Below are positions 3,183 through 64,000 of a stretch of 64,000 nucleotides of DNA, one piece after another. Numbering within the stretch: the stretch's first letter is position 1; each line of letters opens with the position of its first letter. Source of the DNA: Podarcis melisellensis (Eukaryota); assembly GCA_964234715.1 (NCBI GenBank), contig OZ174275.1; one strand, 5' to 3'. Under the pieces are notes generated by a model. That model had not been told where the DNA came from. It made no database searches and worked only from the letters and a program-made list of their open reading frames with translations. Position numbers and translations under genes: made by a program.

Positions 3183-3501
3183 CTGATGGGGGAAGTTCAA
3201 AGAAACGCAGTAAAGGAAAAGGCAAGCAACACTTAGAAATCGGACGCATTAAAAAGGAACAGGACTCAGTCAGACTTTGCATCAAAATGTTGTGGGGGCA
3301 GGGCCCTGGGCAAGAGATGGCTAATGAGATCTGAATTACTGCAAATGTTCCTTAAATGATTTGTCACAAAGTTGCCAGGCATATGTTCCGTTAGGGAAAT
3401 TCAGGTACATGGCCCAAGAAGGCTAGGAGATGGCTGAAGATGACAACTCAACATCACTATTTTCTGTGGTTGTGCTTGCTTGTGGAATGTGCTTGCCTGA
3501 C

Positions 3502-8952: not shown

Positions 8953-9123
8953 NNNNNNNNNNNNNNNNNNNNNNNNNNNNNNNNNNNNNNNNNNNNNNNN
9001 NNNNNNNNNNNNNNNNNNNNNNNNNNNNNNNNNNNNNNNNNNNNNNNNNNNNNNNNNNNNNNNNNNNNNNNNNNNNNNNNNNNNNNNNNNNNNNNNNNNN
9101 NNNNNNNNNNNNNNNNNNNNNNN
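8953..9123. other. Assembly gap
   Basis: Run of N. Confidence 1.
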
Positions 9124-20070: not shown

Positions 20071-20275
20071 NNNNNNNNNNNNNNNNNNNNNNNNNNNNNN
20101 NNNNNNNNNNNNNNNNNNNNNNNNNNNNNNNNNNNNNNNNNNNNNNNNNNNNNNNNNNNNNNNNNNNNNNNNNNNNNNNNNNNNNNNNNNNNNNNNNNNN
20201 NNNNNNNNNNNNNNNNNNNNNNNNNNNNNNNNNNNNNNNNNNNNNNNNNNNNNNNNNNNNNNNNNNNNNNNNNNN
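20071..20275. other. Assembly gap
   Basis: Run of N. Confidence 1.
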
Positions 20276-28247: not shown

Positions 28248-28293
28248 CTTGGTATCTGAAGAAGTGTGCATGCACACGAAAGCTCATACCAAG
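28248..28293 (+). ncRNA. Minimal type I hammerhead ribozyme
   Basis: cttggtat-CTGAAGA-a-gtgtg(catg)cacac-GAAA-gc-TC-ataccaag: stem I, catalytic core, stem II, palindromic AGCT stem III. Confidence 0.75.
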
Positions 28294-28380
28294 AACTAAC
28301 TTAGTTGGTCTTTAAGGTGCTACTGGAAGGAATTTTTTTTGTTTTGACTATGGCAGACCAACACGGCTACCTATCTGTAA
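28251..28380 (+). mobile_element. Penelope-like element terminal-repeat fragment
   Basis: 12-bp TSD ttggagctcctt; cacgaaagctcatacc...taaggtgctactgg motif; same family as 52898-53102. Confidence 0.8.
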
Positions 28381-42325: not shown

Positions 42326-42637
42326 ATCGCTTTGAAGGTCATATGCTTTCTTTGCCTGGATGCAGTCATTCTGATCAGGGTGGCAAGTCCATTCATGAAG
42401 GTAATGGCGATACGGAATTTCACTGACAACATGCTGGCAGTCTCTGGCTGCAATGACGGATAGTATATCTGGAGGTATATGAATTTTGGACTTGGTTTTG
42501 TTATACGCCTGTTTATACAATCTGTCGTTCTGGATCTTGCCGGCATGTTCAAACCACACCAGTTTCGGGTCCTCTCTCATATTATTGACACCGACATAGT
42601 GACCTCTTTGGTGGACATAGTCTGCCTTGTATTTCAG
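42326..42637 (-). CDS. NEB: NEB exon 312 nt
   Basis: LKYKADYVHQRGHYVG...[10 protein letters not shown]. Confidence 0.95.
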
Positions 42638-44985: not shown

Positions 44986-45642
44986 CTGCAGAGTCAGGGG
45001 AAAATAAGAAGAGTTATTTGCAACACTTTTTTCACTGCATGGAGTGTTTCATACCAAACTTGATTGTTTTTAACTAAAAGGGAAAAGAGGGCTTGTTTTC
45101 CAAGAGCCTACAAAAAGAATGGGATAATAGAAAACTGAAAGGAGGAACTATTCAGGTACAGAATATGCCAGGATCAAATATTACACTCCCCACTTTGATT
45201 ATGCTATGTCTACCACCATCTTGCCTTCTGTAGAAGGCAAAATGGTGCTATATCCTATGTTTGCTCGACATATTCAAATCAGGTAATACAATCATGAAAA
45301 GAATGAGAGCTCAAATCTATACATAATGGAAAGCAATTAACTTTGTATGCATAGATGCATGTGCAGAAGTGAGGCCTCAATGTCCTTCCGTGTGCTTTCT
45401 TAAAGACGTCTGATGATTGTCCAAACAATACTGAATTTATATTAAAAAAATTCACATATAGTATGGATCTTACCTGTTCACACAAGTATTCTAACTATTT
45501 ATTATTTTTTATGAAAAGGAATGTAATAATTGTGGAGACAAAATATCAAACACTTATCATTGTAGAGGCAAATGAGAGACAGAGAGTGATAGACAAGAAA
45601 CTATCAAGAAAGAGGAATTTCAACAACAACCAAATCACTCAC

Positions 45643-45954
45643 GTCACTCTGTAATTCATACGCTTTCCTGGCTTGGATGACATCATTCTGGTCTGGCAGG
45701 CAGGTCCATTCATGTAGATAGCGGCGGTAATCAATGTCACTAACAAGCTTCTGACAGTTCTTGGCCAGCAAGACGGACAGCATGTCAACAGGGCTATGGA
45801 TCTTCGTCTTCAATTGATTATATACTTTCTTGTACTCCCGCTCACTTTGCATTTTAGCTACATGCATAGCCAATACCATCTTGGGATCGTCGTTAATGTC
45901 TCGGCATCCCACATGGTGTCCAAGTTGCTTACGGTAGCCTTCTTTGTATTTGTA
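45643..45954 (-). CDS. NEB: NEB exon 312 nt (copy 2)
   Basis: [25 protein letters not shown]...[10 protein letters not shown]. Confidence 0.95.
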
Positions 45955-46496
45955 CTAATAGGATTTGAAAAAATACATATACAATTAGAATCTTCATCTT
46001 CGTTATCTCAGACTGTAGAAAGATTGATAAGATTGGCAAGAGTTTTCCATTTAACTGTGTTCCTAAGATGCTAAACAAAGGCTGCATTCATGCTCACATT
46101 TACTTGCAATCTATTGAGCAAATCACATATTTTTGAATTCTGTGCGTTACCTATCCTTTACCTGACCTTTTTTTGACCAATGGGAGAGCATAATATTTCA
46201 TCAGGATACTTGACAATTTATTTGGAGCACATGCACAGCCTTCGCCAAGATGGCACCCTTCACATGTTTTGGACAACAACGTCCATCAGTCATGTTGGAT
46301 GAGGCTGATGGATGTTTTAGTTCAAAACATCTGGAGGGCACTAGGTTAGTGGAAGCTGGCCCATAATGTCCTTATATCTTGCCTTGAACTGAGAACTTTA
46401 ATATATTTTCTGTTTCCTGCATTTTAATTCCATTAGATACAAAAGTCCAGAGACAATGGATTACCAAACACTATCAAATTCTATTTGCATACTTAC

Positions 46497-46601
46497 ATCA
46501 CTGGCAATTTCCCTTGAGGCTCTGGCTGTTTTGATTGGGACTGCATCAGCTCTCAGGTCAATATATTTCTTCATGTCATCCCAAGATTCCCTATAAAGTT
46601 T
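46497..46601 (-). CDS. NEB: NEB exon 105 nt (copy 2)
   Basis: KLYRESWDDMKKYIDLRADAVPIKTARASREIASD. Confidence 0.95.
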
Positions 46602-46997
46602 CTACAATAAAAAACCAAAAACATTATATTGTCATTATCCTCTTTCAGCACTTACATATATATGAAAGCTCACTGTCAATCAGCTTTTACTTTTTCCTAA
46701 TCACTCCTGTTTTTGCAGGTAAGAGTTACAGATTATCTCCATATAAAACTATGTAAGGAAAAGTATTTAAACTGCGTGTAAGTAACTGTGGATAACAAGT
46801 GCTAACATCTGTTTTGTGGCATCTCCACAAGCACAATAGATTGCCAGTTTGCACCTATGCAGGTGCAATAACCCACATAGAATTTACATGGGTGCTTGCT
46901 GCATAATGAACTTGTAACATCCAAAGCCCACCTCCTCTGAGTAACTGAAGAAGGTTGTAGAGTTGTAACATAAGAAGAATGGTAGCAATTTACTTAC

Positions 46998-47102
46998 ATG
47001 GCTCACATTGATAGCATTAGCCCTGGACAGCACGATTTCTGGTGTGTCTGGCATCACATGGATCATAACTTTATCTTTATCCCAAGCTTCTCTGTATTTT
47101 GC
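46998..47102 (-). CDS. NEB: NEB exon 105 nt (copy 2)
   Basis: [35 protein letters not shown]. Confidence 0.95.
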
Positions 47103-47164
47103 CTGAAAAAAACATCAAAATTATCTCGTAATTCCTTCTACACCAGTGCTCACATTCCTACATA

Positions 47165-47333
47165 CCGTATTTTTTGCACCATAACACTCACTTTTTTCCT
47201 CCTAGAAAGTAAGGGGAAATGTCTATGCATGTTATGGAGGAAATGCCTATGGGTGGCATGCCTACGGATTTTCCTCCTCTAAAAACTATGTGCGTGTTAT
47301 GGTCGGGTGCGTGTTATAGAGCGAAAAATATGG
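47165..47333. mobile_element. Tc1/mariner-type MITE
   Basis: ta|ccgtattttttgcaccataac ... gttatagagcgaaaaatatgg|ta. Confidence 0.8.
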
Positions 47334-47464
47334 TAATTTCCCTTTAACTTTAGGAACATGAATAACTTTTCTATTAATACAAATAGATGTTTCATGTTAC
47401 AAACAGATAGGGAGGTTCGTAGCATACTTAAAATAATGCCACATTACTCAAAGGAGTTACATAC

Positions 47465-47668
47465 AAGACTCAGTTGCTCAGCATTAGTTTTGGCAAGGAC
47501 AACTTCAGGCGTGTCAACGATGTTGGTAAATTTCAAACGATCCCGAGGAGTGCGATAAACGTTGTCACTCAGAATTTCCTGGGCGAATTTCACCCTCTTC
47601 ACTATTGGAGACTCATGTGGGATCCATCCAACCCCCCGGAGCCATTCAAGATCTGATTTATACACAGC
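47465..47668 (-). CDS. NEB: NEB exon 204 nt (copy 2; ~human exon 106)
   Basis: AVYKSDLEWLRGVGWIPHESPIV...TNAEQLSL. Confidence 0.95.
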
Positions 47669-48325
47669 CTGTGGGAGAAAATTTCAGAGAGGGAGAGCAA
47701 AATATTTCAGTTCAATTCAAAAGAAATACTTCATGTGGTAAATACTGTAGAATGAATGGAACTTCAGAAAGTCAGGACAAACTTGTCTCAATTACATCAT
47801 CAGGATCTAAGCAGTACTATCTCTCTGGACTAGGCCGAAATGGTTCTTTGACCTCCAGTTATATTTCACACCAGCATTTATAGCTTTGATCAGCACTATG
47901 CTGGCTGGGGAGTTGTGGACCAAAACATCTGGAGAGTTCCAGACCTGTGTAGATTGGGCTAGATAGAGTGGGCAGAAAGGTAATCAAATCCATACATATG
48001 ACAGCCCTCCAATCGGTTATGGATTCATTAGCTATTTTTAGATATGCCAATCTATCACATCACTCTTGTCTGTGTTGGACATTCTGAATTAACAACATTT
48101 CAGTTCTTCCTCCCAAGGTACTCATGATGAAATCAAGGGAAGATTAAATTACGTGAAAATGTGACAAGACAAGTTTTCATTAACACAACAAAGTAAACAT
48201 TAAGAAAAGGAAATCTTCCACAACTATCTATCATAATGTGTCTTTTGCTTTCTGTCCCAGCAGTAATGTGTGTTTGCAAAAGACAGATATACTTACATCA
48301 CTTTGCAAAGGACAGATATACTTAC

Positions 48326-48637
48326 ATCGCTCTGTAGATCGTAGGCCTTCCTTGCCTGGATCACATCATTCTGGTCGGGCAGACAAGACCACTGGTGCAG
48401 ATGTTGGCGATAGTCCACCTCACTTACTAAAGACTGGCATTGCTTGGCTGCTTGGACAGACAGCATGTCCACCGGTATAGTAATATTGGCTTTGGATTTG
48501 TTGTAAGCTTGCTTATACAACCGGTCATTCTGCATCTTCAATACTTTAGCAGCAAATGAAAGTTTAGGGTCCTCCTTCACTGAAGGGCATCCAATGTAGT
48601 GGCCTTTCTGTTTCTCATGAGCTTCTTTGTACTTGTA
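48326..48637 (-). CDS. NEB: NEB exon 312 nt (duplicated block, copy 2)
   Basis: [25 protein letters not shown]...[10 protein letters not shown]. Confidence 0.95.
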
Positions 48638-49742
48638 CTGAGCAGGAAAGAGAATTGGAAGTTACAGTTATTTGATCAATTTCCAGGAGAAAAGTTAGAA
48701 GTTCTTGAGGCTTCAGTTTTTAAGGGATTTAGCTATGGAATAATGAGAGGGTAAATAAAACATAGTACGGCTCCCTAATTCTGTCTTTATGAAATATTTA
48801 CCTGGATTTGTTATTAGGGATGAGAGAGAAATGCGGTTCATTTTACATTTAAAGTCACACTTCCATAATTCACACTTTATGAATACTGTATACAGAAGTG
48901 TATATGTATTATGAAAAATTCGCACAAAAATGCTGATGAATTTTTATTAGAACTAAAAAAAACCCCAAAACAATGTGGAAATGTGGAGAATTGACATTTT
49001 TGGCCATCCCTAATTGTATACATCCTGAGCCTAAGTAAAAAGATGTATTTTTTTCAAATAACCGAATATATATGTGGTTGCAAATTATACAAAGTCACAA
49101 TGTCTTTTGAAAGGCACAGACCACTTTGTTTAATAGTGAAAAGCTACTGATGAAATTTGGCTATCCAAATAAATAGTTCAGAAATGGCAATCATATGCAT
49201 TTTTACTTGGAACAAAGCCCAGTTGGGCATGGTGGAATTTACCCATCTGAGTAAAAATGCATAGGATGGTGTGCTCAGGGTGCTAAACTTGATTTGGAAA
49301 CTATGCAAGATTATTTTATTATTATTATTTAATTAATTTATATACCACCTTATATACAGAGGTCTCTGACATTCCACAACTTAAGAGTAAACTTTAAAGT
49401 GATTGTAAAGAAAGGGGAGGGGGGAACACTTGAGTGTTTTTAACAACAGGAAGCAACAGATTTAATTATTGCAAAGTCTTTACAGTGCCAAATATCTCCA
49501 AATTTATCACAGTTAGCTCTTTGGCATTTAAAATAATGGACTATATTAAACTTTGTTTGAAAGAAGACACTTTCATAAATTGTAAAAGAATGGAAAGAAT
49601 GATGTCATAGACATGCAGTAGAGGATCTTGTATATGGGTGGATAAATACGGTTTTGAAATTGTTCATATACTTTGACATGTACACTCATCATATGAAGAT
49701 ATAGCCATTTGAGAAGTAAATGTTAAATAAAAGAGATTGTAC

Positions 49743-49850
49743 CTCACTGGCAATTTCTCTGGAGGCTTTGGCATGCTTGACTGAAATAGCATCACCTCTT
49801 ATGTCGTATCCTTTTGCTTTGGCCTCGTCCCAGGCTCCAGTGTAATGTTT
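49743..49850 (-). CDS. NEB: NEB exon 108 nt
   Basis: [36 protein letters not shown]. Confidence 0.95.
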
Positions 49851-50206
49851 CTGCAATCAGAATAAAATGCACAGTTTTCAATGTAATCATAAAATACATG
49901 ATGAAAACCACTATAGACATTCTTCAATCAACACTGCGATCCAATGCAGGTTTACTTAGAAGTAAATCCAACTGTGCTCAATGGGCCTTACTCCGAAGTA
50001 AATATGGAATGCATAGGACTGCAGCCAAAAGAGTAAAAATGTGAATGCTGTGTAATATGACACATACAAACACTGCATAAATATAGCTTATACAGATATA
50101 TTTGTTTGCATGCATGCATACGTCTTATATAACTGACGCTGACAATTTATTTGGGGCCTAGATAAGAAACAGAATGATTGTGGGGAAGTACAATTTAGTA
50201 ATAATA

Positions 50207-50351
50207 GAGCTTGACAGGCAGAAGATATTGAAGAAAGACTGACATTATCCAAATCACAAAATCATCAAAGCGTGTAACAATGAAACACTCTGACAACGTT
50301 GGGATTTGGAACAAGTCAGTCTCTTTTTAATATCTTCTGTCCATGAAGTTC
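50207..50351. repeat. Imperfect ~53-bp inverted repeat (old MITE-like foldback)
   Basis: cagaagatattgaagaaagactgac..ccaaatc pairs with gatttgga..gtcagtctctttttaatatcttctg. Confidence 0.75.
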
Positions 50352-50522
50352 AGTTAATTCTCTTTATTACGTCTGAATAAAAACTCACAAGTAAGACCCA
50401 AATGCCTTATTGTTTTTAAGAACAGTTAATGATGGGAAGTTGCATTTGACACAGTTGAACAGGTACAGATGCATCACTACCCACATTCCACTCATGAGTA
50501 TATAGTTAGTTAATTCTCTTAC

Positions 50523-50627
50523 ATTGCTGATATTCAGAGCATTAATCTTGGACTGCAGCATCCCAGGGGTGTCTGAAGGAAGATGGAACTGAGTCTTCTC
50601 TTTATCCCAGGCTTCACGATACAGATT
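50523..50627 (-). CDS. NEB: NEB exon 105 nt
   Basis: NLYREAWDKEKTQFHLPSDTPGMLQSKINALNISN. Confidence 0.95.
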
Positions 50628-50771
50628 CTAAGAAGGAAGTGAAGGCATAAATGATTGCAATGCATCACAAAAACCTCTTATTTTTCAAAGGTATGCAATT
50701 ATAATTCACCTGTTCCCAATACCAATTTGTCATCATAACGAATACAGTAACTGGGTAATTCCCAAGCTTAC

Positions 50772-50975
50772 CTCACTGACTTGTTGGGCATTGATCTTAG
50801 CCAGGACAACGGGTGGTGGGTCAGCAATACTTGTAAATTTCAGTGCATCTGGACGTTGCTTATACAATCTGTCATTCAGGATATCTTGGGCGTGCTTCAC
50901 TTTGAGCACTTCCACAGAGCCCTCTGGCATCCAGCCAATACCACGCAGCCATTCTAGGTCTTGTTTGTAGGCGTT
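50772..50975 (-). CDS. NEB: NEB exon 204 nt
   Basis: [20 protein letters not shown]...INAQQVSE. Confidence 0.95.
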
Positions 50976-51665
50976 CTGCAAAGGAAACAGTTATTAACAA
51001 TATGGCTGAAAATGTTTCCTCCAATTTATTAAGAAGGCTGTTGCTGCCTCTCCGGCTCTACCCATCATAATACAGAACTGCTCAGCTTCCATGGCTGGTC
51101 AATCACAAGAAGTACATACCACTAATGTGGTATTAATAAACAGCACTCTTTTTATCCCTTTTCAAGCTGTATATGGCAGAACAACAGTACTGGCCATGAG
51201 TAATACAGATTCTAGTAAATAACTCCAACACCTAAAATTCTCTGGAATAGAAAGTAAAAGACCAATTGAAATGGACACCTCTAGAAGCATTTAGTTCTAT
51301 GCAAGTGCCACAAATTCAGGTTTTGGTGCCTCACTTCATCAGGTTTGTATGCATGGATACATGTGTTGAACTGAGTTCTCAATGTCCCCTTGTGTTATTT
51401 CTTAAAGAAGTATGATGATTGTCCAAACAATACCGAACTTATATGTTAAAAATTCACATGTACTATGGCTCTTAAGATGTGTCACGTGTTCACAGAAGTA
51501 AAACGTTTATTACTTTTTAATGAAAAGATATGTAAGAATTGTGGAGACAAAATATCATTGTAGAGCCAATAGTAATAATCCACCAAATGTCATGACAGAG
51601 GAAAGAGAGTGACAGACAAGAAGCCATCATAAAAGAGATATTGCAACAATAACAAAATCACTCAC

Positions 51666-51977
51666 ATCGCTCTGTAATTCATACGCTTTCCTGGCTTGGA
51701 TGACATCATTCTGGTCTGGCAGGCAGGTCCATTCATGCAAGTAGTGGCGGTAATCAATGTCACTAACAAGCTTCTGACAGTTCTTGGCCAGCAAGACGGA
51801 CAGCATGTCAACAGGGCTATGGATCTTCGTCTTCAATTGATTATATACTTTCTTGTACTCACGGTCACTCTGCATTTTAGCTACATGCATAGCCAATACC
51901 ATCTTGGGATCGTCGTTAATGTCTCGGCATCCCACATGGTGTCCAAGTTGCTTACGGTAGCCTTCCTTGTATTTGTA
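51666..51977 (-). CDS. NEB: NEB exon 312 nt (copy 1)
   Basis: [25 protein letters not shown]...[10 protein letters not shown]. Confidence 0.95.
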
Positions 51978-52523
51978 CTAATGGGATTTGAAAAAATACG
52001 TATACAATTAGAATCTTCACCATAGCTATCTCAGACTCAGAGCTTTTTTTCAGCTGCAACTCACTTCTGGCACTTGGGTGCCATTGTATTGGTAATGTAA
52101 ATATTCAGCACATGCATAGATCTTTGAATTTTACACATCCTTCATCTGACATTTTTTTGACCAACAAGATGAAAGCTTTGGTTCTAAGAGATTAATATTC
52201 TACTTCAGAAACCTTCATCAGGATACTGGACATTTTACTTGGAGCATATTTAAAGCAAACAGCAGCCTTTGCCAAGATGGCACCCTTCACATGTTTTGGA
52301 CAACAATGTCCATCAGTCATGCTGGATGAAGCTGATGGATGTTTTAGTTCAAAACATCTGGAGGGCACTAGGTTAGTGAAAGATGGCCCATAATGTCTTT
52401 ATATCTTGCCTTGAACTGAGAACTTTAATATATTTTCTGTTTCCTGCATTTTAATTCCATTAGATACAAAAGTCTAGATACAATGGATTACCAAACACTA
52501 TCAAATTCTATTTGCATACTTAC

Positions 52524-52628
52524 ATCACTGGCAATTTCTCTTGAGGCTCTGGCTGTTTTGATTGGGACTGCATCAGCTCTCAGGTCAATATTTTTCTTCA
52601 TGTCATCCCATGATTCCCTATAAAGTTT
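52524..52628 (-). CDS. NEB: NEB exon 105 nt (copy 1)
   Basis: KLYRESWDDMKKNIDLRADAVPIKTARASREIASD. Confidence 0.95.
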
Positions 52629-52897
52629 CTACAACAAAAAACCAACAACATTATATTGTCATCCTCTTTCAGCACTTACATATTTATGAAAGCTCACTGT
52701 GCATCAGCTTTTACTTTTTTCTAATCACTCCTGCTTTTTGCAGGTAAACATTACAGGTTATCTCCATATAAAACTATGTAAGGAAAAGTATTTAAAGTGC
52801 ATGTAAGTAATTATGGATAACAAGTGCTAACATCTGTTTTGTGGCATCTCCACAAGCACAATAGATTGCCAGTTTGCATACAAACAGCTAAATAAAT

Positions 52898-53102
52898 TCC
52901 TCCAGTAGCACCTTAGAGACCAACTAAGTTTGTCATTGGTATGAGCTTTTGTGTGCATGCACACTTCTTCAGATACGGAGTGTGCATGCACACGAAAGCT
53001 CATACCAATGACAAACTTAGTTGGTCTCTAAGGTGCTACTGGAAGGAATTTTTTAATTTTGTTTCGACTATGGCAGACCAACACAGCTACCTACCTGTAA
53101 CT
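52898..53102. mobile_element. Penelope-like insertion with inverted arms and a mutated hammerhead
   Basis: 12-bp TSD agctaaataaat; ~68-bp inverted arms; absent from the paralogous intron (~46850). Confidence 0.82.
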
Positions 53103-53251
53103 AGCTAAATAAATGCAGGTGCAATACCCCACCTAGAATTTACATGGGTGCTTGCTGCATCCAACTTATAACATCCAAAGCCCCCTTCATCTGAGTAACT
53201 GAAGTAGGTTGTAGAGTTGCATCGTAAGAAGAATGGTAGCGATTTACTTAC

Positions 53252-53356
53252 ATTGCTGACATTGATAGCATTAGCCCTGGACAGCATGATTTCTGGTGTG
53301 TCTGGCATCACATGGATCGTAGTTTTATCTTTATCCCATGCTTCTCTGTATTTAGC
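53252..53356 (-). CDS. NEB: NEB exon 105 nt (copy 1)
   Basis: [35 protein letters not shown]. Confidence 0.95.
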
Positions 53357-53438
53357 CTACAAAAATACAGAATTATCTGTTAATTCCTTTCCGCTGAATA
53401 ATTAAAATAATGTCATGTTGCTGAAAGGTGTTACATAC

Positions 53439-53642
53439 AAGACTCAGTTGCTCAGCGTTGGTTTTGGCAAGCACAACTTCAGGAGTGTCAACGATGTGGG
53501 TAAATTTCAAACGATCCCGAGGAGTGCGATAAACGTTGTCACTCAGAATTTCCTGCGCATATTTCACCTTCTTCACTTCTGGAGATTCATTGGGGATCCA
53601 TCCAATCCCCCGGAGCCACTCCAGATCTGATTTATACACAGC
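53439..53642 (-). CDS. NEB: NEB exon 204 nt (copy 1)
   Basis: [23 protein letters not shown]...TNAEQLSL. Confidence 0.95.
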
Positions 53643-54293
53643 CTGTGAGAGAAAATGTCAGAAAGGAAGGGCAAGATATTTCAGTTCAATTCAAAAGAAA
53701 TACTTCATGTAGCAAACAGAATGAATGGAACTTCAGAAAGTCAGGACAAACTTGTCTCAATTACTTCATCAGGATCTAAGCAGTACTATCTCTCTGGACT
53801 AGACCAAAATGTTTCTTTGACCTCCAGTTATATTTCACACCAGCATTGATCAGTACTATGCTGGCTGGGGAGTTGTGGACCAAAACATCTGGAGAGTTCC
53901 AGACGTGTAGATTGGGCTAGATAGAGTGGGCAGAAAGATAATCAAATCCATACATATGACAGCCCTCCAGTTGGTTATGGATTCATTGGCTATTTTTAGA
54001 TATGCCAAGTCTATCATGTCAATCATGTCTGTATGATGTGTTGGACATTCTGAACTAACAACATTTCAATTCTTCCAAGGTACTCATGATGAAATCAAGT
54101 GAAGATTAAATTACGTGAAAATGTGACAAGGCCAGTTTTCATTAATAAAGCAACTACAGATGTTATCAGCGAAACAAAGTAAAAATTAAGAAAAGGAAAT
54201 CTTCCACCACTATCTACCATGATGTCTCTTTTGCCTTCTGTCCCAGCAGAGTTGTGCTGTTTGTTTGGCTTTGCAGAGGACAGATATACTTAC

Positions 54294-54605
54294 ATCGCTC
54301 TGTAGTTCGTAGGCCTTCCTTGCCTGGATCACATCATTCTGGTCGGGCAGACAAGACCACTGGTGCAGATGTTGGCGATAGTCCACCTCACTTACTAAAG
54401 ACTGGCATTGCTTGGCTGCTTGGACAGACAGCATGTCCACCGGTATAGTAATATTGGCTTTGGATTTGTTGTAAGCTTGCTTATACAACCGGTCATTCTG
54501 CATCTTCAATACTTTGGCAGCAAATGAAAGTTTAGGGTCCTCCTTCACTGAAGGGCATCCAACATAGTGGCCTTTCTGTTTCTCGTGAGCTTCTTTGTAC
54601 TTGTA
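54294..54605 (-). CDS. NEB: NEB exon 312 nt (duplicated block, copy 1)
   Basis: YKYKEAHEKQKGHYVGCPSVKEDPK...[10 protein letters not shown]. Confidence 0.95.
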
Positions 54606-55471
54606 CTGAGCAGGAAAGAGAATTGGAAGCTTAAGTAATCTGACGAATTCCAAGGAGAAATGTTAGTAGAAGTTCTTGGTATTTCAATTTTCAAGGGATT
54701 CGACTATAGAATATTCAGGGGGTAGATAAAGCATAGTAAGGCTCCCTAATTCTGTCTTTATATTATAAAATATTTACCTGGACTTGCTATTAGGGATGAG
54801 AAGGAAATGCAGTCCAGTTTGCAGTTAAAGTCACACTTCCATAGTTCACACTTTTTGAAATGAGAACCAAAAGAAGCACAACTATGCTTTGAAATTCACA
54901 TTCTGCAAATTTTGTAGTGCACATCTGTGGCCAAGTAGTGCATGCAGAAATGGATACTCTTGTGTAAAGTATGAATATGAAAACATGCATTAGTGAAAAT
55001 CATACAAAATTTCATTAGGGAAAATGGTTTCGCAAAAATGTGTATATTAGGCAAAATTGCACACAAAAATTATATTAGGAGAATTTCTCGCTAAGATGCT
55101 GATGAATTTCCATGAAAGCTTTTTTTAAAAATACAAGCCAATGTGGAAATGTAATAATTTACTATAAATGGCTGTAAAATCAGATTTAATATGTCTGCTT
55201 GAAAATATGCCTGCCATTTTGGGACCAGTTAAACTAAGATTGTGAAAAATAGCTCATCTTGGCTTAACTGGCAATATCCAATGCTGGAAGAAAAGATCTC
55301 TACAGCTTGAGAACCAATGTAAGCAAATTTCAGGATGTATCCGTGCCAACAGTCTAAAAACTGAAAATGCTAATCTAAAATCAGTTTCCTAATATTTACC
55401 AAAATATTAGCCACCTGTTTAGCCTTTTAGGAAATAACATTACAGAAATAATATACAACAGTTGACAGTAC

Positions 55472-55579
55472 CTCACTGGCAATGTTTCTTGAAGCCTTGG
55501 CATGCTGAATTGCAATGGCATCCACTCTTAAGTCATAACCTTTTTTCTTGGCTTCTTCCCACCCTGCTTCATAATGTTT
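55472..55579 (-). CDS. NEB: NEB exon 108 nt
   Basis: [36 protein letters not shown]. Confidence 0.95.
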
Positions 55580-56093
55580 CTGTGAAGGAAATGAGTAACG
55601 CAGCATTCATATCAGCGTATTTCAATTTTTTTTTTAGTAAGGGTCCTGAATATTAACTCATGTGCTTAAGATCTTCAGGTTGTAATTCTAAGTGCAAGTA
55701 ATGGTAAATTTGATCAAACAATATGAAAAACACTAAACAAAAATGGATTGACTTAATAATTTATGAAAACATTAATTGGCCTCATTATAAAATAGTAAGT
55801 CAGTGTGCCGAATAAAATCATCACAGTAAAGCAACAACATGTTCCAAGCACAAATGCCACAACAGAGCCAGCACTAAAACATCATTGATTAGGAAGGCCT
55901 TTGTGAGTATGTGTGTTTAAACCAACCAGAGGAATATCATCACTGTAGATGCCCATTGTAACTCTAGGGGAAGGTCATTCCATGGCACGGGATGCATTAA
56001 ATATTACCATGTTGCCTTTTCTTCCATGTCAAGCTCCAATAGAATTTTATTGCTATGGTGTATACCGGTACATGTATTCAAACTTATAATGTA

Positions 56094-56431
56094 GTAAAGG
56101 TAAAGGGACCCCTGACCATTAGGTCCAGTCATGGCCGACTCTGGGGTTGCGGCGCTTATCTCGCTTTATTGGCCGAGGTAGCCGGCGTACAGCTTCCGGG
56201 ACATGTGACCAGCATGACTAAGCCGCTTCTGGCAAACCAGAACAGCGCACGGAAACACCGTTTACCTTCCCACCGGAGCGGTACCTATTTATCTACTTGC
56301 ACTTTGACATGCTTTCGAACTGCTAGGTTGGCAGGAGCAGGGACCGAGCAACAGGAGCTCACCCCGTCACCAACCTTCCGATCGGCAAGTCCTAGGCTCT
56401 GTGGTTTAGACCACAGCGCCACCCGTGTCCC
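56094..56431 (-). mobile_element. Sauria SINE, near full length
   Basis: 5' gggacacgggtggcgctgtggtctaaacc on the minus strand, (ACCTTT)n tail. Confidence 0.9.
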
Positions 56432-56996
56432 TAGCATATAATGTATCTTACTCAAATAAATGCTGAAAAATGTATGTTTTTATACTGAGCCTAAAAATAA
56501 ATGAGTTAAAACTGAGGAACGAAGGGATGAAATAAAATATAAAATTAAATCCTCTTACTTACTGCTATCTAACTTCACACTAAGAAACATTGCAATGTTT
56601 TTTCTAATATTCAGTATTATGAGAAAGATCAAACATCATTCCAGTAGATGTGACAAAACTTCCTCTACTTTGCCCCACCCAATCTGCTCCAGAAAACCCC
56701 CTAGCTTGATATAAGCTATCAACAATATCATATTTTTCACATTAAAGACATTCCTGCTTCCCACCTTCCATTTGTTTGCTCAAGTCTAGGGAATCATGAA
56801 TTCAGTGAAAGGGCATTACTCATAGCTAATCAGAATTGGTTACTACATAGAGAACTGAATGGGCATTTCATATATTCATCCTTTAGTATTCTCAATTCCA
56901 ATCATAAAACAATTTTAATTGAAAGGCAATTCTTACCCAAACCCCTTATTTAAAGGTCAGAATTGCTTTACAGATGTATTCACATTTAATTCTTAC

Positions 56997-57101
56997 TTTG
57001 CTGACGTTCAGAGCATTCATTTTGGACAGAACCATCTCAGGAGTATCAGCTGGAAGAGTAAACTGTGTCTTTTCTTTATCCCAGAGTTCACGATATAATG
57101 C
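56997..57101 (-). CDS. NEB: NEB exon 105 nt
   Basis: ALYRELWDKEKTQFTLPADTPEMVLSKMNALNVSK. Confidence 0.95.
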
Positions 57102-58005
57102 CTAATGAGGGAAAAAATACGGTACTTCTTTCTGTCATAATGTACAAAGTACATATTGAGATTATACATACAAAACCCTCCATACAAGCTACTTGTGTAA
57201 GTGGCCTAATCGTGTGTGCAGCATCACATAAGGCTTTTTTATTGGGGATTTATTAAAGAACAGTGGTTACTCCACTGTTAGAAAAATTGCAATGTTTGGC
57301 ATTTCTAATCACAGAAGCAATCTTTTGCAAGACCTGCCCCTGCATCTATGTTCCTCAACAATCAGATAAACATACAGAAATATGTTCCAAATGCAGAGGT
57401 GCATCCAATAGTATCTTTGCAGTTGTAAGGAGGTACTTTTGTTTGATAAAGATGGCGCACACAATTTTCATATATGCCCACCTACCCACTGCTCCTAAGG
57501 CTTGGGAGACCTTCTGGCATGGAAGGATTCAATAGGTAAGGGAGTGTGGCAAAATGAGGTGGTATCACCTTATACGAATGGTATTACCATTCACTACTGG
57601 AAAGCTGATACTGGATACAACCTATACTTTTGCATTGCATTTATTTGAATAAATAAAGGTGTTTACTATGATAGCAGTCAGAATGGGACGGTTTTCAAGC
57701 ATTAACTCAGTTTAAAGGCTCTCTAGCTAAGTGTACAGATCATGAAACAAACTGCAATCTCTGCACCCCAATTGCCCCAATGGAAAGCCTTCTTTGACTT
57801 CAGAGGGATCTAAATGTGATCTTAAATGAGAGCATAGGCAGCCTCAAGTGACTGTTGAAAATCAAAGCTGCATGGGTTTTGTGCTTATTATTTTCATATA
57901 TCTCACTTGATTCCAGCATGCTGGAGTGAGCATCTAGAAGTACATTCTCCTCACATCCAAAACGCAGATACCCGAGGACCAAAAGGCAAATGCAAAGTTT
58001 CTTAC

Positions 58006-58209
58006 ATTGCTCTGAAGCAGAGCATTGGCCTTTGCCAAGACAATTTCTGGAGAATCAACAATAGCGGTGAATTTCACAGAGTCTGGTCGTTGACGGTACA
58101 GTCTGTCATTCAGGATCTCCTGGGCCTTCTTCACTTTTAAGACTTCCAAAGAACCTTCTGGAATCCAACCAATACCACGCAGCCATTCTAGGTCTTGCTT
58201 GTAGACGTT
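58006..58209 (-). CDS. NEB: NEB exon 204 nt
   Basis: [15 protein letters not shown]...ANALLQSN. Confidence 0.95.
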
Positions 58210-59214
58210 CTGCAAAGGAAACAATTGGGCTATTAACAATATGGTTGAAAATGTTTCCTCCAATTTAAGGTCTGCCAATTCGTACTATCATATGTTTGAT
58301 CCATCCCATGCTAAATCTTGAAGACTAGGGGTGAAATTAATGGACTTAACCATGGTTATTAATTTCAGTGGGTCTACTTTGAGTAAAACTGAGGTGAATA
58401 CTACACTTGCTCTAAACACAACCCTTGTACCAGGCCCAATAACTCTTACACTGCAGTCCTTAGCATGGTTACATAAAAGTCCCTACTGAGCAAAGTGTGG
58501 CTTGTTCCCTAATTATTGTATTTAGGACTGCTAATCCAAATTATTTGTAGCAGCACCAGCACAAATAGGTTTAGGCACTTTTACTTACCATATATTAGTT
58601 TACATTAGTTTTAGTTGTGTGTTTGTTTTTTTAAGTGTTTTAAATGCATTATAACATCGTGACTCCAGATGGCGCTGTAGAGTTTGGCCTTTCTGCAATG
58701 TGATTTCCCATTATGAGGTTTACAACGTGTTTTCCTGAAATGCTTTTATGATGTGTCTCAATCCAGCCCAGGGACATTGGAATTTTATCTTTATTGATGC
58801 TCACTTTTTACAGCCTGCTTAACCAAGTAGAGTGTTTCTGTGCAGCCCTGCACAGTTTTGCATAAGAGAGCTCAGCTGGAGTTTCTGGACTGAAACGCAT
58901 CAGACTTTTATTTCTTTATGAATAGTCTAAACATATTTTAATCCCATTCAGAAATTTATGGAAACATAGGAAGCTGTCTTTATATCGGCTCAGACTATTG
59001 GTCCATCTAGCCTAGTCCTGCCTCTCTGATCAGAAGCTAGGGTCTCAGGCAACGAGAGAGGTACCTGACCTTTTAAACTTGGTACTAACTCTTTTCAACT
59101 CAATAAGCCATAGACTGAACCTGAGAGACCTTCTGCTTGCAAAGTAGGTGTTTTGCCACTGAGCTGTGATCCCACCTCCATGTACCCAGGTGCTTTATGT
59201 TTGCTTTTACGTAC

Positions 59215-59526
59215 ATCACTTTGTATGTCATACACTTTCTTAGCCTGAATGACGTCATTCTGGTCAGGCAGGCAGGTCCATTCATGCAGGTAGTGGCGGT
59301 AATCAATGTCACTAACAAGCTTCTGACAATTCTTAGCCAACAGGACTGACAGCATGTCAACCGGACTATGGATCTTCGTCTTCAGTTGATTAAATACTTT
59401 CTTGTACTCCCGATCGCTCTGCATTTTAGCTACATGCATAGCCAACACCATTTTGGGATCATCTTGAAGGTTTCGGAACCCGATATAGTGCCCTTTCTGC
59501 TTCTCATATGCCTCTTTGTATTTAAA
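59215..59526 (-). CDS. NEB: NEB exon 312 nt
   Basis: [16 protein letters not shown]...[10 protein letters not shown]. Confidence 0.95.
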
Positions 59527-63943: not shown

Positions 63944-64000
63944 CTGACTATAGTTTAGCTTGTTGAATTTTGACAGCATGATTTCAGGTGTATCAGGCAT
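63944..64000 (-). CDS. NEB: NEB exon (truncated by window edge)
   Basis: [19 protein letters not shown]|GTGAGT. Confidence 0.93.

Follow-up and report, generated by a model that had tools for sequence, protein, structure and literature searches.

We analyzed a 64,000-nucleotide (nt) stretch of the genome of the wall lizard Podarcis melisellensis (GenBank assembly GCA_964234715.1, contig OZ174275.1; referred to here as the window). The 3' part of the nebulin gene (NEB) lies on its minus strand, from position 64000 down to approximately 1200. Nebulin of Lacerta agilis (P0337) gave 64 ordered matches to the window (residues 3219 to 6416; tblastn), showing collinearity with an annotated orthologue. 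Of the proteins found, Podarcis muralis nebulin (P0395) was the closest; 11 mismatches were counted across 22 exons, most of which were 100% identical. All 22 exons between 63662 and 45643 (minus strand) had AG/GT borders and an open frame. Matches to the Pfam Nebulin repeat (PF00880) had E values of 5e-11 to 5e-16, and each of the eight exon peptides tested scored above the curated cut-off of this family (36.6 to 58.5 bits vs 20.1). The seven-module period of nebulin was apparent from exon sets of 312+204+105+105/108 nt (i.e., 242 or 243 amino acids [aa]). SDxxYK actin motifs were present together with a WLKGIGW-type tropomyosin motif once per super-repeat, and exons end in ..SD, with the next exon starting in xx. 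We take the window to be the 3' part of the NEB super-repeat region of a Podarcis wall lizard. It contains two runs of N (8953-9123 and 20071-20275).

Regarding exon classes, we refer to the 312-nt exons as heads (types A and B) and to the trios of 204+105+105/108-nt exons as tails (types a0, T1, T2, U, and T3). The 5'-to-3' layout in the window is A0 a0 / A' T1 / B1 U1 / A1 T2 / B2 U2 / A2 T3 / B''. The elements that concern us are as follows.

59215..59526, minus strand: A' head exon (312 nt), part of the super-repeat that precedes the duplicated zone; AG/GT borders, open frame, 100% identical to P. muralis nebulin residues 3517-3620.
55472..58209, minus strand: T1 trio, an old super-repeat tail; exons 58209-58006 (204 nt), 57101-56997 (105 nt), and 55579-55472 (108 nt).
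51340..55162 (clear homology, 54880-51340), minus strand: copy 1, derived; B1, 54605-54294; U1, 53642-53439, 53356-53252, and 52628-52524; A1, 51977-51666; introns included.
49743..50975, minus strand: T2 trio, an old tail between the two copies; exons 50975-50772 (204 nt), 50627-50523 (105 nt), and 49850-49743 (108 nt).
45340..48995, minus strand: copy 2, at the parental position; B2, 48637-48326; U2, 47668-47465, 47102-46998, and 46601-46497; A2, 45954-45643; introns included.
42326..42637, minus strand: B'' head exon, i.e., the first 245-aa super-repeat and the anchor for super-repeat counting.

A five-exon block (312-204-105-105-312 nt) and its introns is present twice on the minus strand (54880-51340 and 48900-45340). 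A preliminary description of this DNA had reported such a block repeated about 6.0 kb apart, and the exon borders and our self-comparison (blastn and MAFFT), which gave an offset of 5958 to 6256 bp, bear this out. Chance similarity is excluded by a blastn E value of 0 for the blocks and by a perfectly identical run of 209 nt (described below). A recount returned the same amino-acid differences between the copies as were first given (B, 2/104; U, 6/68, 4/35, and 1/35; A, 2/104). Exon DNA was 95.9% identical (995/1038) and aligned intron columns were 86.0% identical (1861/2163); the two long introns reached 92%, and the outer parts 78 to 82%. Beyond a repeat found only at the edge of copy 1, faint homology resumes (55073-55162 vs 48907-48995; 72% identity), with a local score of 31, compared with at most 19 for shuffled sequences. 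Between the two copies lies a 2.4-kb stretch of unrelated sequence with the three distinct exons of the T2 trio.

Several insertions and dispersed repeats distinguish the copies or are common to them (no strand assigned).

52883-53113: 231-bp foldback repeat, copy 1 only; a gap in copy 2, with a self-inverted match, a relative at 28252-28380, and a summed contig depth of ~10^6.
47138-47415: 278 bp, copy 2 only; in the intron after the 204-nt exon and before the first 105-nt exon, with no other copy in the window.
54888-55074: high-copy repeat, copy 1 only, at the upstream block edge; summed contig depth of ~6900, compared with ~60 to 160 beside it.

The foldback repeat was inserted after the duplication. 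At 52270-52456 and 53766-53952, contig depth was 10 to 100 times that of the surroundings; these dispersed repeats occur in both copies and are therefore either older than the duplication or co-converted.

Public sequencing runs, searched as assembled contigs (Logan), contained both the edge of the block and its transcript. The upstream block edge was bridged by DNA contigs in two samples of the organism that held this region best (54600-55073 and 54600-55061). A 775-nt contig from a different organism joined 55579-55472, 54605-54293, 53641-53438, and 53355-53278, i.e., the last exon of the T1 trio (T1_105b), B1, and the first two exons of U1, without introns and with ends within one base of the predicted exon borders. 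Its T1_105b part showed zero differences from the window. As no layout but the derived one has a T1-to-B junction, the extra unit would be transcribed and spliced into RNA in the organism from which the contig came.

A search with a single exon returned mainly fragmentary proteins of lamprey or fish-like type and led on to full-length nebulins. We cut 19 nebulins, one per species, into super-repeats at the 104-aa heads, which were spaced by 242 to 246 aa, and counted units back from the first 245-aa super-repeat (B''). Layouts were assigned by best match and tree, and species were compared at the protein level. The window layout was found in all 15 sampled isoforms (RefSeq models) from four lacertids, namely, L. 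agilis, P. muralis, Podarcis raffonei, and Zootoca vivipara. None of the nebulins sampled from gecko, skink, anguid, snakes, turtles, birds, and mammals had it. The layouts of the sauropsids discussed below are listed here.

Pseudonaja: A'T1, A T2, B U, A T3; the simplest layout among the squamates.
Heteronotia (gecko, isoform X4): A'T1, A U, A T3; two super-repeats fewer than in lacertids.
Elgaria (anguid): one extra [T2 B], i.e., [T2 B] x2.
Crotalus and Ahaetulla: [T2 B] x3-4.
Tiliqua: four identical [B U].
Buteo and Grus: three to four identical [T B].
Lacerta, both Podarcis, and Zootoca: the window layout, A'T1, B1U1, A1T2, B2U2, A2T3.

All sampled nonlacertid amniotes except Tiliqua, a skink with five consecutive 242-aa units, had exactly two 242-aa super-repeats (units 1 and 2) before the anchor, preceded by 243-aa units; Lacerta had a third 242-aa unit, at position 4. 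The U-type trio, which carries the motifs VYRTP / NAE / KLYRE.WD.MK, had been described as duplicated here and single copy in human, and we found it once in each of the eight mammals, two birds, two turtles, three snakes, anguid, and gecko examined (in mouse, the three motifs lie in the single unit-2 tail). Among nonlacertids with a single-copy U, the U tail had no close paralogue, the best match being 47 to 55% identical (48 to 55% in the eight mammals). Recent duplicates in these mammals were confined to units 4 to 12 and never included the U tail.

Some models in this set call for separate comment. Super-repeat runs of 94 to 100% identity lie beside the U unit in Tiliqua (P0277), Buteo (P0172), Grus (P0283), and Crotalus (P0275). 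They could represent either very recent tandem amplification or repetition in assembly or annotation, two possibilities that proteins alone cannot separate. In Heteronotia binoei (P0266, isoform X4), an A-type head is joined to the U tail (residues 3760-4001), and the model contains no T2 or B; the [T2 B] unit is either absent from geckos or skipped in this isoform. In the caecilian Rhinatrema bivittatum (P0151), the anchor is preceded by three 242-aa units, of which the second and third have tails that are 99% identical, which we regard as a probable independent duplication at the same place in an amphibian.

The tail tree separated the old components of the locus from the recent ones. The T1 clade (99*) also contained the T1 tails of skink, anguid, gecko, and snakes, while T2 formed a separate clade with those of skink, anguid, and snakes. 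T1 and T2 are therefore ancient paralogues that lie outside the recent event. At the nucleotide level, the two trios matched in exons only (77 to 81%) and their introns gave no alignment, in agreement with the marked divergence of the preceding trios noted from the start. The U1 and U2 tails of lacertids, by comparison, were sisters within the squamate U clade (support, 88), and in a dedicated U-tail tree, the U1 copies of Lacerta, Zootoca, both Podarcis species, and the window formed a clade (97/99*). In skink, anguid, and snakes, T2 directly precedes B-U, and the window has this T2-to-B junction in common with them. Copy 2 is therefore the parental one, and copy 1, between T1 and A1, is derived. 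Two tandem schemes, with units of [B U A T] or [T B U A], were rejected on the tail tree, in which T2 was unlike T3 and T1 unlike T2.

Compared with Pseudonaja, the net gain between A'T1 and B'' is one super-repeat, B+U (four exons, 726 nt, 242 aa), i.e., seven actin-binding modules and one tropomyosin site, with frame and register kept. The copies are closer to each other, introns included, than to the orthologous units of other lineages, and the gain is an integer number of super-repeats, as in an in-register expansion. The copied segment includes the A1 head and its preceding intron; the A head formerly at this site was therefore either replaced by the copy or merged with it. The presence of one layout in the Lacerta, Podarcis, and Zootoca models indicates that the duplication is old, common to these lacertids, and already annotated, and the event predates the split of the three genera. 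The independent lizard expansion put forward in the preliminary description, which keeps the seven-module register (+242 aa) and is absent from the sampled mammals and birds, thus holds for the lacertid lineage; it is not private to this genome and is present in existing RefSeq models. The comparisons support an event on the lacertid lineage that is independent of the mammalian and avian expansions.

We consider it probable (roughly 85%) that a one-super-repeat, non-tandem copy of the B-U-A segment arose on the lineage leading to the sampled lacertids, has been maintained by conversion since, and is transcribed and spliced in a related organism. Starting from an ancestral layout like that of Pseudonaja (A'T1 / A T2 / B U / A T3), a B-U-A segment of ~3.5 kb including introns was copied into the site of the upstream A head, giving A'T1 / B1U1 / A1T2 / B2U2 / A2T3. 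One conceivable route is a break beside the upstream A head, repaired from the near-identical A head downstream, with synthesis continuing across U and B. Another is a two-super-repeat unequal crossover followed by the loss of one A-T2 unit. Later, the copies exchanged sequence by gene conversion, mainly in the 312-nt exons.

The traces of such exchange are distinct. The B heads cluster by species, and at columns 27, 59, and 66, both copies carry the same residue within a species and different residues between species. Within the window, a perfect-identity tract of 209 nt lies in the B exon (54307..54515, minus strand, vs 48339-48547); the expected number of such runs at mean divergence is 4e-8, and we interpret it as a recent gene-conversion tract. 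The A exon contains perfect-identity tracts of 115 and 95 nt. The higher identity of exons (96%) than of introns (86%), with values falling to 72 to 82% at the block edges, points the same way. Species-specific substitutions common to both paralogues and over-long identity tracts are thus found together, as in interlocus gene conversion. Five residues of the 204-nt U exon are copy specific in all lacertids, and P. raffonei U2 has acquired three U1 residues. Read from alignments, these patterns show that continuing gene conversion keeps the copies alike, most strongly in the 312-nt exons, with the U exons retaining copy-specific residues.

Conversion also touches neighboring exons. In Zootoca (P0392), residues 3723-3758, encoded by the exon before B1 (the orthologue of 55579-55472), are 100% identical to the last T2 exon (T2_105b) and 69% identical to T1_105b; the conversion tract seems to extend one exon further upstream than in Podarcis and Lacerta. 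The A' head (59526-59215) groups with A1 (51977-51666) and A2 (45954-45643) of the same lacertids (clade, 99*), not with the A' heads of other squamates, a grouping that would fit exon-confined homogenization among three 312-nt exons. Grouping by species is also seen in skink, anguid, snakes, and gecko for the A heads of units 1 and 3. Upstream of the duplicated zone, the A0 head (62372-62061) is 100% identical in protein to the Lacerta P0337 head one super-repeat further upstream (residues 3031-3134 / 3274-3377), and the P. muralis tails of units 8 and 9 are 100% identical to each other, which points to further recent duplications or conversions upstream of the window.

Several points weigh against a lacertid-specific B-U-A copy or limit how precisely it can be drawn. 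The sampling included no teiid, amphisbaenian, Gallotia, or iguanian nebulin, and breakpoints, introns, and conversion tracts were compared at the DNA level within the window only. The joint lacertid U1+U2 clade in the U-tail tree had modest support (62/90), with the U2 copies unresolved. The block edges are 72 to 82% identical, so the event could be much older than the center of the block suggests, or the edges could reflect older paralogy. As the sequencing runs were used as contigs and not as reads, they provide no read depth, long-read span of the two copies, or inclusion level. Finally, the 775-nt contig came from a related but different organism, and the RNA status of its run is a guess.

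Of the alternatives, the one that survives best is an ancient second B-U super-repeat, of early squamate or older age, that persisted in lacertids only, was lost elsewhere, and looks young as a result of conversion. The diverged block edges, the modest support for a lacertid-only U clade, demonstrably active conversion, and the many lineages that gain and lose units in this region are all in its favor. It would, however, require independent losses in gecko, skink, anguid, and snakes, plus absence in turtles, birds, and mammals. Moreover, the five copy-specific residues of the 204-nt U exon are stable across lacertids, indicating that U was not fully overwritten, yet U1 groups with U2. We consider this history unlikely.

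Still less probable is a tandem duplication of an eight-exon, two-super-repeat unit of ~6 kb, as in the human triplicate region, with the trio part diverging faster. Such a unit was implied by the preliminary description, and it accounts for the ~6.0-kb spacing and for the position of each copy after a 204-105-108 trio of the same class. The different clades of T1 and T2, with their skink, anguid, and snake orthologues, nevertheless place the split of the trios well before the divergence of the B-U-A copies; their introns are unalignable; and the lacertid excess over Pseudonaja is one super-repeat, not two. The copied part was B+U (with A) alone, in an interleaved arrangement, so that this part of the first account has to be given up in favor of the non-tandem B-U-A copy.

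An assembly artefact, in which two haplotypes, or a repeat collapsed or expanded in assembly, would pass for two copies, has only the general risk in repetitive genes to recommend it. It is excluded for practical purposes, as the preliminary description had argued for haplotypes, by the unrelated 2.4 kb with three distinct exons between the copies, the 14% intron difference with an insertion specific to each copy, the same layout in four other lacertid assemblies, and the contigs that bridge the block edge in two samples and join T1 to B in spliced form.

Nebulin length is thought to set thin-filament length. Under the ruler model, each super-repeat corresponds to ~38.5 nm (PMC7863720), and by inference from this literature, one more super-repeat should lengthen the nebulin ruler by ~38.5 nm. 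When lacertid NEB is annotated, the near-identical 312-nt exons of this zone should be taken as the real paralogues that they are, not as assembly errors. The registers of expansion differ among lineages: lacertids and skinks amplified [B U], snakes and anguids [T2 B], and raptors and cranes the same [T B] type, and the regular array ranges from ~18 to 23 heads (a rough count from head lists). Counting back from the first 245-aa super-repeat, the skink, snakes, anguid, and two birds expand units 2 to 6; the same few units have been hit in different registers by several squamate and bird lineages. As a tentative extension, which we regard as doubtful in its entirety, squamates might offer a natural series for the nebulin-ruler idea, in which three to four super-repeats near the 3' end of the array were amplified independently and in different registers; the non-tandem lacertid unit would probably be a product of break repair from a paralogous 312-nt exon, with its heads kept near-identical by exon-centered conversion at least since the Podarcis/Lacerta/Zootoca ancestor. 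If this were true, super-repeat number would be both generated and policed through the 312-nt exons as substrates of recombination, and thin-filament length among lizards should follow the super-repeat counts.

A literature search with nebulin and lizard terms gave no relevant paper among the matches listed. Lineage-specific duplications of nebulin super-repeats were reportedly described by Björklund et al. in 2010 (J Mol Biol 402:38). Across 53 vertebrates, nebulin has 21 to 31 super-repeats, a spread ascribed to independent duplications by multiples of seven modules; these were mostly central, with none seen toward the C-terminal end, and the duplicated units differed between species (Gohlke 2021, PMC7754682). 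The reptiles in that set were alligator, turtle, and viper, and it contained no lizards (PMC7754682). The lacertid duplication is the same phenomenon and adds a lacertid example to a known kind of nebulin expansion; counted from the end of the regular array, the copied unit is super-repeat six. Expansions reach nearer the C terminus of this array than was reported in the 53-species survey. The mammalian U tail lacks a close paralogue and mammalian duplicates lie at units 4 to 12, so the unit and register affected in lacertids differ from those of the mammalian expansions, and the event lies at the 3' border of the zone in which expansions are known.

The human triplicate region (TRI) comprises three tandem 10-kb, eight-exon blocks (exons 82-89, 90-97, and 98-105) with six super-repeats (PMC9109913, PMC7863720). 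Like TRI, the lacertid locus lies in the 3' half of the super-repeat region and is an intragenic duplication of whole super-repeats and their introns, with the seven-module register preserved; its high similarity invites further non-allelic exchange. Unlike TRI, with its three highly similar two-super-repeat blocks in tandem, it consists of two interleaved copies of a five-exon segment whose introns are ~86% identical. A TRI-like tandem segmental duplication does not describe it, the similar blocks being split by 2.4 kb with the unrelated old T2 trio, nor does a gain of two super-repeats per copy, since lacertids stand only one super-repeat above Pseudonaja. The duplication furthermore includes the U-type tail, which is single copy in the eight mammals checked, and it is fixed across several lacertid genera. 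As in the other squamate expansions (Tiliqua, Elgaria, Crotalus, and Ahaetulla), the same few super-repeats were amplified in whole-super-repeat steps; in contrast to the tandem arrays of those squamates, whose units are 94 to 100% identical in protein, the lacertid copy is non-tandem and older.

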